DNA of 36,544 nt from Vitrella brassicaformis CCMP3155. Lineage: Eukaryota > Protista > Chromerida. This document shows, piece after piece, positions 21,595-30,515 of this stretch (positions are counted from its first letter, which is position 1; every line of letters begins with the position of its first letter). The notes under the pieces are model-generated. The model saw only the letters and a program-made list of their open reading frames with translations. It was not told the DNA's origin and made no database searches. Both the position numbers and the translations under genes were made by a program. The DNA lies in the NCBI GenBank assembly GCA_001179505.1, contig CDMY01000651.1, positions 1-36,544 of the forward strand, in the 5' to 3' direction.

Positions 21595-22929
21595 CCACAC
21601 ACATGCTTTCGTGCCGTCCGCTCTGAGTGAGTGTCCCGTGTTCCTCTGACTGATGTGCGGGTGTGGATGTATTGTCTGCCTCAGTATGTGATCGGCGAGG
21701 GGACGGACCTTATGGCGGATACGTAGGCACACACTGGGAGGCTAGAGAGACAACACAGACGGACAGACAGGCAGATCTCAGACAGATATGCGTGCATGTA
21801 TTCCCCATAAGACATGACCCCAAAAGCATCCCAAGACATGCATCCGGCCAGTCGGAAGGAGAGGAGTGGAGTAGGTCAGCACCAGGGTGAGTCCTGGAAG
21901 GACGAGAAGACACGCGGACTCAGAGAGAGAGCGAGATCTGGCTGAGCGAAGAGGACGCTAGAAGGGCAGCTAGCTGTCGTACGAGTACTCGTGTCGCCTC
22001 GCTGCGGACTCACCGGGAGGGTGATCAGCTCCGAGAGGGAGATCAGCAGGACGACGCACTCGTTCTCCACCATCACTCACATGCGCACTCCACCATCACT
22101 CTGCGGCTCCAAGGGCGGCTTGGGAAGACGCCCTGCCGAAAGGAAGCGGTCGGAACGACCGAAGACCGTGCCGAAGCAACAGATCTCAAGAGAATGACTC
22201 AAGTCATATCGGAAGCGAACAATAACGAATCATATATGAAACGCAACGGGCACTAACTCGCTCGGCCAACTTCTCCCGTCTTACGCCCCCAAGCCCACGC
22301 ATGCATTTAGAAAACCAACTACAGCCTCATCAGAAGCCCACGCATGCATGCACTGCAGGCTTTCTAGCGCTCTTATTCGCTGCCTCCCCTGTGCCCATCT
22401 ACGGCTTGTCGTCCTGCTTACACACGACTACTATCCTTCAGCCTGTCATCCATCCATCAGCATCAGCATCAGATCCATCCGTCTATCCGTTCATCCACGG
22501 GCTGCATCCTCTCCATCAGCACACGGTCCACGGCATCCAATCCATCCGTCCATCACATCCAGACACACACGTCCACACTTCCAGTTATCTGAGCCGAGCG
22601 CCTTCATCAGGGTCACAGGCAGGGGCGAAGGGCATCGTGAGCACTTCGCAACAAGTGGGGTGGTGCACCTCTTTTGGACATCAAAAACAATGAGATAAGT
22701 GAACACACATTCTAACACCATCGGTCATTGCATGATGTGCTCATTACATCTCAACAGGGTGAGACGCCGTAGGATGAAGCACAAGAGTCCAGGAAGACTG
22801 AGCGGCAGCTAATGGAGAAAGGCCGGCAATAGGATAGGCGCTTTCTGTGTGGTGTTCCAGTCAGTTTGTGTGTCTATAGCTACATGACTTCAGTCGTTTT
22901 GCCACTGCACCATCACACATTCACCGCAT

Positions 22930-23794: not shown

Positions 23795-26192
23795 CTAAGC
23801 CACTGTCCCTTCCCCACCCGCCTCGTCCTTCCCCTCCGCCAGCCATTCGAAGGGACAGGTCTGCGCAAGGGACAGACCGATAACCTCTTGAATGGAGGCA
23901 CGTGATGGCACCACGCCGATATCTTCGTCTCCAGCACGCAGCGGTTGGTCCAATCGTTCGATTTTCACCTCCTGACCCTGATCACCGCGCAGCCAGATGG
24001 CACGGACGTAGACCTTCACAGGCTTGCCCGCACCGCTGTCGAGAAAGGAGGCCAGGACACCCCCAGGCCCACCCCCCTTTGGCGCCACCGATGCGAGCGC
24101 TTCAGACACACTGCGCTTGATGATGGCGACGGAGTCTTTGTCAGGGCCCGTCGGTCCCTCCTTGCATTGGCCGCCGTATATCGTCGTCAAGCGCCCTCTC
24201 TCGGTCACAAAGACGAAGAAGTCGAAGCCAAGGAAGCTTGAGTACTTCGGCTTGACGAAATAAGACACGCGGGGCTCTCCTGCAAGTCTCGGGTCCATCT
24301 TGTCGTAGAAGATGGTGATGAGATCCTTCAGCGTTTTTGGCTCGCTTGATTGAATGACGCCCCCAAACTTGCATCCATCATTGACTGCAGCAGGGACCAA
24401 CTGGGCTGCCGCGCTGCTCAGGGCTGCTTCTGCCTCTCCGATGGCCACCAAGTGACTGTGGAGGAGTCGGAGCAGCACCCCTGCGCCGGCAACGCCCTCC
24501 CATCTTCTGCCGGACCCCCTCTCATCGAGTAGCTGGTTCAGGAGCGTGGGAATCACCCTCAAACCAGCGGCAAATCCTTCGCCGAGCGCCGACTTGACCT
24601 CATGGGACTCCCCCAACTCCTTACACGCCAGGCCCAGATAGCACGGCGGCCACGTACACGAATCGCCGAAGACGTCCAGGAAGCGCGACCAGGTCCCGAG
24701 TTTGTCCAGAAGCTGGCCGTCGCCCTCAATGGCTGTTCGAATGACGTTTTGGGCAAGCGCCGCATCAAGACGAGGGACTTTCATTTTTCTGAAGGGCCGT
24801 CGCACGTTGTCTGGCTTGGGCGGCTCTTCCGAGTACATGAGCGTCAGCAACCCAGGCGCCCGCCCAGTCCAAGAGACGATACCAGCGTGTGTGTCTGGGC
24901 AGAGGCCGCTCTCGGTCACATCGGAGATTCTCTCCACCCTCGGAATTTGCGGTTTGTAGACGTCGCGGCCGCTGAGGTTCCAGTAGTAGCTCTCGAGACG
25001 GTTCCCTAGTGTGGCGATGTGGCTCGAAAACACGAAGTAACGCTGCCGCTTGTCGACAAAGTGCTCGGTCAGAAAGTCAGCCACCTCCTTTGCCAATGGC
25101 TCTTCCTTGAACTCAGTGTCTGCGGGGATGCGCTGGTTAAGTTCGTCAGCGAAGAGGACCAGAGAGTGGCTGCCGAGCCACTCCTGGATTGTCCTGCGGC
25201 TGACCGAGACGTTCTCCACCCAGTCGCTGAAGGTGACTTGGGCTGCAGGCTTTCCCAGAGCCTGTGCCACCTTGTCGAGAGCCTCCGGTGTTGCAGTGGC
25301 CCAGGCTATTCGCAACGCGATGGACTGCAGCGGGCTGCGGGCGGATAGCTCGAAGTCGGTGGGCTTCGTCCCCTCGTTGAACCTGCAGAACGATAGATCG
25401 CCACAGACAACAAGAAACATCTCACCATTGCTGGCTGTACACCAGCCTCTGTCTGTCTCTCTGTCTCTCTGTCTGTCTGCTTCTACATACGTGACAAATA
25501 GGGCAGGGATGTCCTTTTTCTGGAGCCCCAGGGCGATCTGCTTCATCAGTCGGGTCTTGCCACCACGCGAAAAACGAGTGACAACCATCGGCGGCACACG
25601 GATGGCACGGTCCTCGTCGCGCGCTTCATAGTGCCCGACAAGCTCTTGCGAGATCTTGTCGAGTCGCCCTTGGCCGATGTACGGCTGTTGCTGGCCGAGG
25701 TCGAGAGCGACGCTTGGCGCGAGTCGGAGGCCACGATCGATGGGCTCGGTGAGCCTGTCGACACTGATCAAGTCGCCAGCCTCGATCTCCACATCATTCT
25801 TGCCGCGGACGCCCAGCGGTGCAACGACGGCATCTGTACACAGACCCACACACAGACAAACAGACAGACAGACACTACTTGAATGAGTGCTTGCCCGCCT
25901 CGTCCTCTCTCGCTGGCTGGCTCGCTCCATCCCATCCAGCTAGCTAAGGAGGTGTACCTACGGGCAACTGGCCGCTCGTGGCAGTTCCTTCACTCATCAG
26001 CACCAGCCTCGTGGCTGTCTTGAGCCGCCTCACTCGTCGCCAGGCAACAGCGCTGCGGTCGCGCTGGTTCGCGTTGATGTGGGTCGGGATGGTGCGGTGT
26101 AGGAATGCCATAGATGCCGGCACCGTCCTCTCAGCCACGCAGCACAACAGCCATCCTCCCAGCACAATGAGGAAGTACAAGACAGCCATCAT
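23795..26192 (-). CDS. Crinkler/RHS-like protein: signal peptide + transit-like peptide + P-loop NTPase + PD-(D/E)xK nuclease fold (~721 aa, 3 exons, apparently intact)
   Basis: Model complement(join(23795..25382,25491..25833,25958..26192)) = 2166 nt with GT-AG introns, matching phases and no internal stop. Walker A variant TRFSRGGKT (~25553-25579); Walker B LVLFADE (~25143-25163); C-terminal FLGFDFFVF...YGGQCKEG (~24158-24235). Confidence 0.8.
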
Positions 26193-26749
26193 CCAGCGGG
26201 GAAGCGACACTGAGGATGGGTCATGCATGAGCTGGGCGTGCCCATACTGCAGTCAAACAGGAACACAAACAGGCACATACAAGATATCAACTACATGACT
26301 GAGAATCACAAACAGGCACATTCACCGTGATGCAATCAACCAACGTCATACTGGATGGCCTCACTCACCACGGATCTGCCACAGATTCACCTACGATGAC
26401 ACTCAACCCCACAGAGGGCAGGAACACAAGCTTCAGTCGGCCCGTGCGTGCACGAGGAGATAGATGGCCGGCTGGCCAGAGCAGCTTCACCAGCTGGCCG
26501 ACTCAATCACCGGAACCAAGCTTTTCGCTGCTTCACGCGCACGTTCGTGGTTGACACGTCTGAAACACGCACAGACACACAATGCATACACTTTCAGTCA
26601 GAGATGCCGAATCTCTGTTTTCACACCTGTTCTCGCGCTGAAGCACTCAAGCCACAGGTCCACACCTGCGCACTCGCTTTCTCGACTTCTTGCACCTTTC
26701 TCACTCGCTCGCGCTCGCTTAGGGGTTTAACGAGACTCCTGTCCCTAAC

Positions 26750-27196
26750 GCGTGAATGCAACAGGGCCTGACGTTCTTGCTGTGGCTCGCCCAGTGGGCA
26801 AGGAGCGTGCGATCAGGGTGGTTCGTTACTATCCGTTTTTTTCTCTGTTCGCTTCCAAGCTATATAGCTTGACACACTGAAGCAAGGCCAGTCAGTGAGG
26901 TTGGTTGGGAGAGATTCCCTTCCGTAGAAGCGCTCACCGCGCCCATTGGCTTTACTCACTGATGCGCTGACTCTGACTGCCTCGTGAATGATGGTTGGGA
27001 ACGTGCTTGAGATCGGAAGAGCCACCTCGAGATCTGCTGGAGCACACGCAACGTGACGGCAATGACGTCTTGACGTGTCCAAGCAGAACCGCATCGGAAT
27101 CAGCTACAGAAAAGCTGCACTCGGCTTATACCGCTTCTGTGTCGGGGTCCGAGTTGAGGAGGGAGGCGGTGCCTCTCGTGCGTCTGTGACGGTGAA
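26750..27196 (-). mobile_element. Duplicated copy of the decayed Copia 3' pol (RT-RNase H junction) segment
   Basis: Near-identical to 27617-28060, which is contiguous with the Copia RT. Confidence 0.75.
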
Positions 27197-27616
27197 GAGC
27201 GGAGATGGTGGGCATGATGGACTACGACCTGGTGATGTGGACGTGCTGACGACGACGGGCTGCTCACTATATGTTACTCTTTCCCGTTCCCTCTACCTTC
27301 CTGCCTTGCTGTGTCGGGATGGGCACGACAAGGAGCAGCTCGAGATAACAGTGAGAGACCGGCACGTCAGGACTGAAGAAGCAGAGACGAGAAGTGGAGA
27401 AGATGCAGAAACGAGAAGAGAAGCGTGTCTATCTTTTCACGACATGATGGCTGACTATCTCTGTGCATCACAGTGAATGGATGGGGATGGGAGAGGTTGT
27501 TCGTTGGTGTTGAGAAGACAGACAGAAGGCACCCATCTGGGGAATAACGTGTGCCTGATTGGCTTGTCGGCTAGCATCGACTCACTATCTCTCTCATCTT
27601 TGCTTGCTTGCTGTGT

Positions 27617-30515
27617 GCGTGAATGTAACTTGGCCTGACGTTTTTGCTGTGGCTCGCCCAGTGGGCAAGAAGCGTGCAATCAGGATTCGTTACTATCCGT
27701 TTTTTCTCTGTTCGCTTCCAAGCTATATGGCTTGACACACTGAAGCAAGGCCAGTCAGTGAGGTTGGTTGGGAGAGATTCCCTTCCGTAGAAGCGCTCAC
27801 CGCGCCCATTAGCTTTACTCACTGATGCGCTGACTCTGACTGCCTCGTGAATGATGGTTGGGAGCGTGCTTGAGATCGGAAGAGCCACCTCGAGATCTGC
27901 TGAAGCACACGCAACGTGACGGCAATGACGTCTTGACATGTAGAAGCAGAACCGCATCGGAATCAGCTACAGAAAAGCTGCACTCGGCTTATACCGCTTC
28001 TGTGTCGGGGTCCGAGTTGAGGAGGGAGGCGGTGCCTCTCGTGCATCTGTGACGGTGAAGTGAGTCTTGCCCCAGCACGAAAAGAACTTGGTCAGTTCCT
28101 TGCACGCATAGGCAATGAGGTGGTCTCGTGATTGCGCTGTACAGCAGGCTTCCAACCAGCTCTCTGTACGGCAACTCACGTGCGGCCTCTGCCTCTGCTT
28201 CTGTTCGAGGGCCCATTTCTGAGCTCAAACGCACACCTGGTGGCAATGGCGTCATGGCTGGGTTGGCTCGCTCCATTCGGAACTTGGTGAGCAGGCTAGA
28301 GATATATTCGGAACTTGGTGAGCAGGCTAGAGATATATTTCTCTTGTGAGAGTGTCATCTCTCCCTTCTCTTTGTCGTATTTGACTTCGATGCCTACGAA
28401 GGTGTCGACTTCGCCCAGGTCCTTGACGGCAAATCGTTGGCCGATTTCCTCCAAGAACCAATCGAGGTCAGCATCGCACCCAGCATAGACAATGTCATCG
28501 ACAACCACACCCAGCCATAGCTGTCGTGTCTTGTGTGTGAAGATGCAGGGATCAGCGACGAGTGGCTCGAAGCCCATGGCTCTCAGCGACTGCACCAGCA
28601 GCTGATTCCATGCTCTCGGCGCTTCCCTCAGCCCATACAGGGCCTTCCGCAGTCTGATGACATGCCCAGGCTTCTCGTATCCCTCTGGGCGCTCCATGTA
28701 CACAGGAGTGTCCAGTGGCGCGTTGAGGAAAGCGGTGCGTCCAGCTGACGCATCGACCACCCCTTCTTCAATACAGCCGCCAGAAAGGTACGGACAGCCT
28801 GCCCAGACATCGTGGGTGCATACGTCTCTTCGTCAGGTCTCAGCCTCTGTTGGAAGCCTTTGGCGACCAATCGCGCCTTCTTCCTGTCGGGCTTCTGTTT
28901 GAAGACCCATTTGGCCTGGATCACTCGTCCATCCGCCTCCTCACGTAAGACATACTCAAACACACCCAGGTCATGCATGGCTTGATGCTCTTTGTCCATT
29001 GCCTCTATCCAGCCCTCACATTCAGGCCCTTCGCGGGCTTCCTGACATGTTTTAGGCTCATAGACGGTGTCAGCCATCGGTCCTGCCTTGACGCTGAATG
29101 CATTCACAAACAGGTCAGGTAAACCACCCGCATGGCCACGTGAGCGTCTCCTGCCAGCACTTCTCTGTCTCGACTGCTGTGTGAACAGGTGCGACCAGTC
29201 TGGTGGTGCGTCAGAGGTCCTTCCCGCATTGCACATGCATCGTGAGGACTTCACTGCCAGGCAGTGGCAGCCCTTGCCTCCCCTCTTCGCGTCCATCCGG
29301 TCCCCTCCTGTCTTCTTATCCCCACACAGACGTACGACAACCGGTCCATTCGCCACACCGACCTGCACAGCACGGACATCGAATAGATGGTCCTCGTACA
29401 AGCGTCGTGGTATCGTTCTCTCGCGTCCAGAGCGCCGTGGTGGAGGGACTGGTGGTGCTCGTCGGTCGAAAGCCATCTCGCCCTCATCGATCGGCATGAG
29501 TTCCATTTCTGCATCGCTCGGCTGGGGTCGGCTGCTGGGCCTGATGCCGGTTCGGCATCCATCCCATCCACCATGTGGTCGTGCTATGGGTTGGTGGCTC
29601 TCGGCTGCCCATCCATTTGGACGTCGCCTGACCCACTCGGCCCATCGAACGGTTCAGCCCCGCCTGCCTGCACATGGCCTTGCTGATCGAGGTGACCCAT
29701 CTCCTCCAGCTCATCGGGCTCGACATCTCTTATCTCGGGCTTTTCGGCAACAATCGGGTCGCTCTCAGGATTGACTATCACATCCCCTCTTCGAGCCGAT
29801 TGGTGCGCTAAGTCAGCCAGTCCATCCCCTCTTTGCGCATGGTCGTCGACAAGCTCAGGGCGGGCCTGCAGAGGTCCACCGAGTCGATGGGTGGCTTCCC
29901 AGCTGGCCGGCACGAGCCGTCGATGCCAAGTGCGCTTCTCGAGGAAACGAACATCACGCGAGATGATGACGCGTCTTGTTTTGGGGTTCCACATGCGATA
30001 GGCGTCCTTGGTGCGACCATCGTAGCCTATCAGCAGCATGGGAACTGCCCTGGCCGCAAATTTGTGTGCTCTGAAGGGCTTCCGCACATGGACGAAGCCA
30101 AGACAGCCCCACACACGCACATGGCCCAGGTAGGGCCGGCGGGCATGCCACATCTCATATGGCGTTTTGTCCTCTGAGAGGCTCTCTGTTGGCATTCTGT
30201 TCCTCAGATATGCCGCTGTGTCGATGGCGAACGGCCAGAAGGCCTCGGTGATGCCATGACGAAGGAGTAGGGCGGTCCCTTTCTCCAAGAGTGTGCGGTT
30301 CATCCGCTCGGCGACACCATTCTCTCGAGGTGTGTAAGGCGCACTAAACTGACGTTTGATGCCCCTATCAATACACTCTTGCTCAAACGAACCAGCAGAG
30401 AGCTCTTGAGCCCAATCTGGTCTGATAGTCTCAGGTGTCTTGCCCCATTCGCCGCACAGCCGCCGCAATGCAGCTGCCGATTCATCTCGGGTCCTGAGCA
30501 TGTACACCGCCACCA
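27617..30515 (-). mobile_element. Ty1/Copia LTR retrotransposon pol remnant (integrase then RT, frameshifted, 5'-truncated)
   Basis: Integrase IRPDWAQE...APYTPRENGVAERMNRTLLE...FWPFAIDTAAYLRNR...VWGC...IISRDVRFLE; RT EWIEAMDKEH..., KWVFKQK...KARLVAKGFQQ, LRKALYGLREAPRAWN, VVVDDI, YRELVGSLLY. Several frameshifts; 31-bp tandem duplication at ~28277-28338. Confidence 0.95.

Follow-up and report, generated by a model that had tools for sequence, protein, structure and literature searches.

A Crinkler-type ATPase and nuclease gene with a candidate plastid-targeting leader in Vitrella brassicaformis

We analysed a 36,544-nucleotide stretch of the genome of the chromerid alga Vitrella brassicaformis CCMP3155, positions 1 to 36,544 of contig CDMY01000651.1 (hereafter the window; the contig is called C651). 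A gene oriented on the minus strand of this contig, with coding exons between 26246 and 23795, encodes a protein of 733 residues. The predicted protein is composed of an N-terminal leader, an ATPase of the P-loop type and a C-terminal domain with a restriction-endonuclease (REase) fold. The two enzyme domains resemble those of Crinkler proteins. The leader resembles those that bring nuclear-encoded proteins into the plastid of chromerids. Below, we describe the gene and its transcript, the domains of the protein and the distribution of the leader among paralogues, before weighing the possible destinations of the enzyme.

Gene structure and transcript

The gene is intact, transcribed and spliced as three coding exons. 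Coding exon 1 (25958..26246) contains the ATG (26226-26228) and encodes residues 1-90 plus the first base of codon 91. Coding exon 2 (25491..25833) encodes residues 91-205 in part, with the N-terminal conserved region and the Walker A motif of the ATPase. Coding exon 3 (23795..25382) encodes residues 205-733 and ends with a TAG stop at 23795-23797. Coding intron 1 (25834..25957; 124 nt, GTACAC..GTACAG) and coding intron 2 (25383..25490; 108 nt, GTATGT..CTGCAG) separate these exons. Upstream, an intron of 122 nt in the 5' untranslated region (5'UTR; 26247..26368, GTGAGT..CTGCAG) follows a non-coding 5' exon, whose 3' end lies at 26369..26420. All these features are on the minus strand, and all three introns have GT..AG ends.

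The three introns are spliced out in Logan contigs from three public runs (X1, X2 and X6). The 5'UTR joint, from 26369 to 26246, is found in contigs of X1 and X6, and the joint 25833|25958 between exons 2 and 1 in X2 and X6. Intron 2 is skipped in contigs of X1 and X6. One X6 contig of 518 letters spans exon 3, exon 2 and exon 1 across both coding joints. The unspliced, genomic form is present in run X4. A preliminary description of this locus, made from the sequence letters, had proposed the same three coding exons. The spliced contigs bear out this model, including the removal of introns 25383-25490 and 25834-25957 and the joining of exon 1 to exon 2. The same description had missed the further non-coding 5' exon beyond intron 26247-26368 and had placed the start of the gene at 26192, whereas the open reading frame (ORF) opens at the ATG at 26228.

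Two ORFs cover the gene in the genomic sequence. Intron 2 is in frame and free of stops, and a 711-residue ORF (25930..23795) reads through it, uniting exons 2 and 3; this read-through form differs from the spliced form in the RNA-derived contigs. The leader is encoded in a separate ORF of 94 residues (26228..25944). Because an in-frame TGA (26387-26389) precedes the ATG in the spliced 5'UTR, we place the start of the protein at the ATG at 26228. The protein thus begins MHDPSS..., 12 residues upstream of the MMAVLYF start proposed earlier.

A transcript ORF from MMETSP (P0001, 733 residues, labelled 'complete') lacks both coding introns and equals the three-exon product at 726 of its 733 residues. 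Identity is full over exon 1 (90/90), exon 2 (113/113) and the two residues encoded by split codons (D and T), and reaches 521/528 over exon 3. All 7 differences are confined to the last 33 residues of exon 3, where P0001 resembles the paralogue P0003. They most likely reflect a chimera of the assembly or an allele.

Intron 1 (25834-25957) contains low-complexity DNA of the CAGA/CAGACAGAC type, which draws contigs from across the genome and gives a spike in depth. When translated, this DNA imitates hydrophobic signal-like peptides of the form CLSVCL.

Domains of the encoded enzyme

Residues 150-480 (24557..25657, minus strand, with intron 2 inside the span) correspond to an AAA+/STAND-like ATPase followed by a helical and winged-helix part. 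The preliminary description had named a Walker A (RFSRGGKT) and a Walker B (LFADE), and both are found on the minus strand. The divergent Walker A, S-R-G-G-K-T, is located at 25553..25570 (residues 179-184, with K183), and the Walker B, L-V-L-F-A-D-E, at 25142..25162 (D284 and E285), immediately followed by L-N. In the Walker A, Arg replaces the first Gly of the GxxxxGK[ST] signature. The family consensus has the same form, RCSRGGKTR, with G, K and R nearly invariant among 93 sequences. Since this form is kept throughout the family, we read the motif as divergent rather than dead. The D of the Walker B is invariant across the family; E, L and N are nearly so.

An AlphaFold2 model of P0001 residues 150-480, built from 93 sequences, has a predicted local distance difference test score (pLDDT) of 93.1. 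We compared it with known structures using Foldseek and VIA-align. The best matches are PAB2304 (PDB 2qen; Z 12.1, 255 residues aligned), CED-4 (Z 11.7), the plant NLR RPP1 (Z 11.3) and SSO1545 (PDB 2fna; Z 11.1). Lower in the list, at Z 9-11, come ORC/Cdc6, BrxC, Avs, TnsC and MuB. In the model, residues 263-330 fold into helices and a beta hairpin that form a winged helix, and the alignments to CED-4, the NLR and PAB2304 extend through this C-terminal helical and winged-helix part. At the sequence level, Pfam ATPase_2 (PF01637) matches P0001 weakly (E 4e-4; 20.6 bits, below the cut-off of 33.2). We class the modelled domain, with its winged helix, among P-loop ATPases of the ATPase_2/STAND/ORC type.

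The C-terminal domain (23837..24511, minus strand; residues ~496-720) was delineated from AlphaFold2 modelling, conservation and structural matches. The model of residues 470-733, from 88 sequences, has a pLDDT of 83.7 and shows an alpha-beta-beta-beta-alpha-beta core. Of its conserved residues, E500 (24497-24499) is located on the first long helix, D592 (24221-24223) on the second core strand and Q610-x-K612 (QCK; 24161-24169) on the third. These residues are found in 80/87 (E), 84/88 (D), 85/88 (Q) and 80/88 (K) of the aligned sequences. Such a layout is that of a PD-(D/E)xK site in which Gln takes the place of the second acid, classically Asp or Glu. The FD...QCK motif noticed earlier is present on the minus strand as GFDFF...GGQCK.

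VIA-align against 48,161 chains placed SgrAI (Z 6.5), N.BspD6I (5.8) and Can1 (5.4) at the top, accompanied by BstEII, R.BspD6I, Can2, VC1899, McrC, SdaI, Bse634I, Card1, Cap4, Shedu and FokI; the top rows are mostly REase-fold proteins, each with a middling Z. In a shape search of the ESM Atlas, the C-terminal model matched C-terminal parts of Mucoromycota proteins, including those of a cluster in which 88% of the members carry a Crinkler head. PDDEXK_4, PDDEXK_7, Transposase_31 and McrBC were matched as well. Because of these VIA-align and Atlas matches, we assign the domain to the REase fold, with residues of catalytic type that suggest nuclease activity. An NTPase (nucleoside triphosphatase) joined to a REase-fold domain was the architecture first proposed for this protein. 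Modelling recovered both folds (pLDDT 93 and 84), the second of them with a PD-(D/E)xK layout, and each part found its own structural matches.

No Pfam, NCBIfam or PADLOC model was matched above its cut-off by the exons or by P0001. PDB searches with the protein and three family profiles returned chance-level P-loop matches only.

Crinkler-type ATPase-nucleases have become known both as toxins that are delivered and as selfish or conflict genes, and trypanosome RHS proteins are said to share their NTPase and REase core. According to the parts of Zhang et al. (2016) relayed in PMC5289972, the commonest Crinkler C-terminus joins an NTPase, a helix-turn-helix (HTH) domain and a REase; toxicity is assigned there to the REase with the NTPase as regulator, and the NTPase-REase pair is traced to prokaryotic transposons. 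Delivery is ascribed to the ubiquitin-like head of Crinklers, and classical signal peptides are ruled out (PMC5289972). Exon 1, exon 2 and P0001 all fail to match the Crinkler head model (PF20147) at E<=1, in agreement with the earlier observation that the usual ubiquitin-like header is missing. A homologue from Nitzschia (P0058, family match E 5.7e-14) passes this model with 29.6 bits against a cut-off of 24.6; another homologue, P0050, reaches 21.4 bits and stays below it.

When Atlas clusters are ranked by language-model features, those nearest to the protein are eukaryotic, most of them from Mucoromycota (similarity 0.98), and clusters named 'Crinkler family protein' reach 0.94. Prokaryotic clusters pairing ATPase_2 with Hjc or Mrr_cat reach 0.87. 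By shape, Crinkler-named Atlas clusters match with a template modelling (TM) score of 0.54. Because P0058 passes the head model and the Atlas 'Crinkler family' clusters match, sequence and model comparisons support that the enzyme part belongs to the Crinkler NTPase-HTH-REase module, the gene not being a Crinkler in the strict sense. Of the initial label 'Crinkler/RHS-like', the first half is therefore retained. The second half is dropped: at E<=1, the scans returned nothing for Pfam RHSP (PF07999), and the named homologues include no trypanosome protein. Among the papers searched, none links Crinklers with chromerids.

Leader, paralogues and surroundings

In chromerids, a signal peptide followed by a transit peptide forms the route of nuclear-encoded proteins, via the endoplasmic reticulum (ER), into the four-membrane plastid. 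The signal peptide comes first, then the transit peptide, and a Phe after the cut is conserved (PMC6668581). The N-terminus of our protein follows the pattern MMAVLYF...PASMA|FLHRT...RLVLMS. Residues 1-41 (26106..26228, minus strand) form a predicted ER signal peptide, with an n-region containing one Arg, the hydrophobic core AVLYFLIVLGGWLLCCVA and a c-region ending with ASMA. The Kyte-Doolittle maximum of the core is 2.85 over 11 residues. A transit-peptide-like stretch follows from F42 to about L77 (25998..26105, minus strand). Arg, Thr, Ser and Ala are abundant in this stretch, one Asp is present, and M-S-E follows. The 49 residues after Phe42 contain 9 K/R, 9 S/T, one D and one E.

We scored the leader with the ASAFind bit-score matrix for Vitrella (PMC6668581 Table S2), slid along the N-terminus in windows of 25 residues. 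The best window is exactly PASMA|FLHRT, directly after the hydrophobic core, with a score of 5.53. Among 61,486 internal windows of family proteins taken as background, 0.0065% reach 5.5. The -5..-1 cleavage part accounts for 3.48. The transit score over 20 residues is 2.05, above the threshold of 1 for Vitrella (PMC6668581). As a positive control, the Vitrella PsbO leader (MKLL...STHA|FVLP...LRMSADQ) scored 6.22, with a transit score of 3.07. The signal and Phe-initiated stretch of the preliminary description hold as sequence features and in their fit to the species matrix, with the stretch beginning at Phe42, after ASMA.

The gene belongs to a eukaryotic family that is expanded in V. brassicaformis. 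An exhaustive HMMER search retrieved 240 cluster representatives at E<=1e-3, of which 97 at E<=1e-10, and a profile search for further homologous proteins added almost nothing. Where a source is named, it is Vitrella, Chromera velia (P0044) or the diatom Nitzschia (P0058); metagenome contigs account for most of the rest. In the 72.7-Mb assembly of Vitrella (1064 contigs), exon 3 has 65 matches, corresponding to about 30 loci, and exon 2 has 32. Several paralogue copies contain stops. The family consensus keeps RCSRGGKTR, hhhhDELN, RYFVFSSH, SGxxWE, a lone D and GYQxKEG.

Leaders of paralogues were searched by a motif scan of the 2.5 kb upstream of 29 paralogues, looking for M, a hydrophobic core, [AST]|F[LIM]H and an open basic stretch. 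The motif was found on the gene strand at eight loci (C651, C438, C794, C927, C86, C40, C783 and C356) and nowhere on the opposite strand of the same regions. At all eight, it is located 316-463 nt before the end of exon 2. The leaders of C40 and C86 are confirmed by annotated or transcript-derived proteins (P0005 and P0009). For several of these loci, identity with exon 3 of the window gene is just 32-42%, and homologues of exon 1 could be recognised at no more than four other loci. In five leader loci, M-S-[EQ] occurs 22-36 residues after the Phe, as in PsbO; this element may be a processing region or an old start codon. An earlier scan of the 29 paralogues for signal-like ORF starts, with a best-window criterion, had yielded a single Phe at +1 on the gene strand. 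Low-complexity intron DNA, which translates to CLSVCL repeats, made it noisy, and the motif scan took its place.

A tree of the ATPase core places 6 of the 7 leader loci included in one 11-member clade (Shimodaira-Hasegawa-like approximate likelihood ratio test, SH-aLRT, 93). C356 was left out, C40 sits on a long unresolved branch, and 'no leader found' on this tree means that the scan found none and does not prove that a leader is absent. Judged by this tree, the leader goes back a long way within the expansion and was retained; this argues for a function, yet it counts as few independent events. Two homologues suggest that similar leaders exist elsewhere. P0102 (768 residues, intronless; ENA metagenome contig L013:952-3258) has its own signal and an LSASA|FTTT leader scoring 5.65 on the Vitrella matrix, and P0069 (Logan assembly of a public run) has a signal and then Phe, YVTS|FQPK.

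The paralogues also differ in their N-termini. C757 (L025) and C866 (L021), close relatives of the leader-bearing C783, have the signal-like start MVHSPLL.WLICLL.HPC...SA|L without Phe, possibly a second type of leader. The closest paralogue, C486:15100-17935 (L015; P0003), is 74% identical in exon 3. In place of the leader of the window gene, its N-terminus is annotated as Coilin_N, a ubiquitin-like domain (37.9 bits, above the cut-off). C486 may be a variant of the head type, or its gene model may be fused. At least six clustered copies of a divergent branch, 31-33% identical to the window gene, are found at C345:28000-86000, and the motif scan found the F[LIM]H leader at none of them. Paralogue C86 adjoins an ankyrin-repeat ORF of 409 residues (L023:641-1867, minus strand), which has a very good plastid-type leader of its own (...INAPA|FVPPSP..., matrix score 6.35).

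Dispersed repeats are located on both sides of the gene. On the 5' side, region 26754-27978 (about 1.2 kb) recurs across the genome, with 40 or more copies or fragments at 77-96% nucleotide identity. On the 3' side, region 21700-22654 is a second, different repeat with at least 35 copies, mostly 84-93% identical and many at contig ends. Neither repeat is linked to any paralogue, and the DNA immediately beside the gene is unique. For these reasons, we reject for now that the gene is part of a recently mobile unit.

Destination of the enzyme and comparison with known systems

We propose the following course of events. The ER signal peptide would be cut, probably after ASMA. Phe42 would then be exposed and head a stretch of about 36 residues that is basic, rich in hydroxyl residues and poor in acidic ones, and the enzyme would be delivered through the ER into the plastid stroma. 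There, the ATPase (K183, D284/E285) would bind and hydrolyse nucleotide and control the nuclease at the C-terminus (E500, D592, Q610-x-K612) or position it on nucleic acid, with DNA or RNA as the substrate. Signal-peptide cleavage, plastid import, enzymatic activity and substrate are all steps that we infer from the features described above. Three results support a leader of the plastid type: the fit to the species matrix, the PsbO control and the retention at eight loci. Because the leader matches the two-part code of chromerids, we consider plastid stroma delivery the most likely destination, with a probability of about 0.5.

Several observations weigh against this proposal. Some concern the leader. 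A transit score of 2.0 is reached by 23% of random Phe-starting windows. Our leader ranks only in the top quarter of such windows, so that it is mainly the cleavage-site part that discriminates. The hydrophobic core, with ~18-20 residues, is long enough to act as a signal anchor. The c-region is long too, and an alternative cut, CCVA|ER, scores 4.38. In three paralogues, Ser or Thr precedes the Phe and the matrix prefers another site. Phe at +1 is also less strictly conserved in Vitrella than in Chromera (PMC6668581). Others concern the enzyme. Foldseek of the C-terminal model against the PDB found no match at E<=0.001, and the Z-scores of the REase-fold matches are middling, at most 6.5. Finally, at least eight paralogous nucleases seem many for a plastid genome of 85 kb.

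The strongest alternative keeps the enzyme and makes the leader purely secretory. The protein would be a secreted or endomembrane toxin aimed at other cells, as in oomycete Crinklers, and the Phe an inherited accident of one lineage. Crinkler proteins with the NTPase-HTH-REase module are indeed delivered effectors (PMC5289972), and a lineage-specific expansion with many broken copies is typical of conflict genes. Moreover, all eight leaders are homologous, so that the shared Phe represents few independent events, and the N-termini of paralogues C757, C866 and C477 are signal-like without Phe. On the other hand, neither Phe at +1 nor a basic, acid-poor stretch of 22-36 residues is known to be needed by a secreted protein, and paralogues with otherwise dissimilar leaders have kept both. 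The leader is built like that of PsbO from the same genome, and P0102 and P0069 likewise have a signal and then Phe. We regard secretion as rather unlikely, while giving it real weight.

The length of the hydrophobic core, which exceeds that of a typical signal h-region, leads to another possibility. The core may be a signal anchor, in which case the enzyme would be tethered to the ER or an outer plastid membrane and face the cytosol or the lumen. This does not agree well with the good -3/-1 motif (S-M-A) after the core, with its cleavage part of 3.48, nor with the same arrangement in paralogues that have shorter cores (C783 and C356), and an anchored enzyme appears improbable to us. More doubtful still is a nuclear or cytosolic, domesticated or selfish transposon-derived ATPase-nuclease that leaves the leader unused, for instance through an internal Met start: the M-S-E at residue 78, TnsC and MuB among the structural matches, the position of the gene between dispersed repeats and the transposon origin of the module given in the parts of Zhang et al. 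(2016) relayed in PMC5289972 would fit, but the leader begins at the first AUG of the spliced mRNA, the leader is conserved across eight loci, and the flanking repeats are not common to the paralogues, the immediate flanks being unique.

Returning to plastid import, a wider scenario can be outlined tentatively. A whole sub-family of at least eight paralogues of a conflict-type, transposon-derived ATPase-nuclease would have moved into the plastid by swapping the Crinkler head for a conserved bipartite leader, and would cut or police the nucleic acids of the organelle. Restriction of foreign or paternal plastid DNA, copy-number control and defence are examples of such roles. We see this as possible, on the unlikely side. 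The ASA|F leader of P0102 hints that the same move was made independently in another alga with a red-type plastid.

In this gene, a Crinkler enzyme module is preceded by what looks like a genuine ER signal and a plastid-style transit stretch, a combination that a set of paralogues has kept. If import is true, a conflict-type nuclease family would be at work inside a complex plastid, which would be rare, and its members would be candidates for DNA control or defence in chromerid plastids and, by descent, in plastids of the apicomplexan type. If the proteins are secreted instead, a free-living, coral-associated alga would be releasing Crinkler-type toxins by the classical secretory route.

Three known systems can be compared with the window gene. 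Among prokaryotic proteins, PAB2304 and SSO1545, of the ATPase_2 family, are the best structural matches of the ATPase part, over ~255 residues. ATPase_2 proteins are often joined to nuclease domains, as in the Atlas clusters that pair them with Hjc or Mrr_cat. In contrast, identity to the window gene is 13-16%, the Pfam score is below the cut-off, and the gene is eukaryotic, with introns and a predicted targeting leader. Crinkler effectors share the P-loop ATPase, the winged helix and the REase fold, as well as an expanded family with many broken copies. They differ by their LxLFLAK ubiquitin-like head, which the window gene replaces with a hydrophobic signal and a Phe-initiated transit-like stretch, and Vitrella is a free-living phototroph, not a pathogen. 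Plastid proteins of chromerids, represented by Vitrella PsbO, have the leader build in common with our protein: a small residue before Phe at +1, a basic, hydroxyl-rich, acid-poor stretch and M-S near its end. The matrix scores are comparable (6.22 for PsbO vs 5.53), and the transit score of PsbO is higher (3.07 vs 2.05). The cargo of such leaders is photosynthetic or housekeeping, whereas that of the window gene would be a conflict-type ATPase-nuclease.

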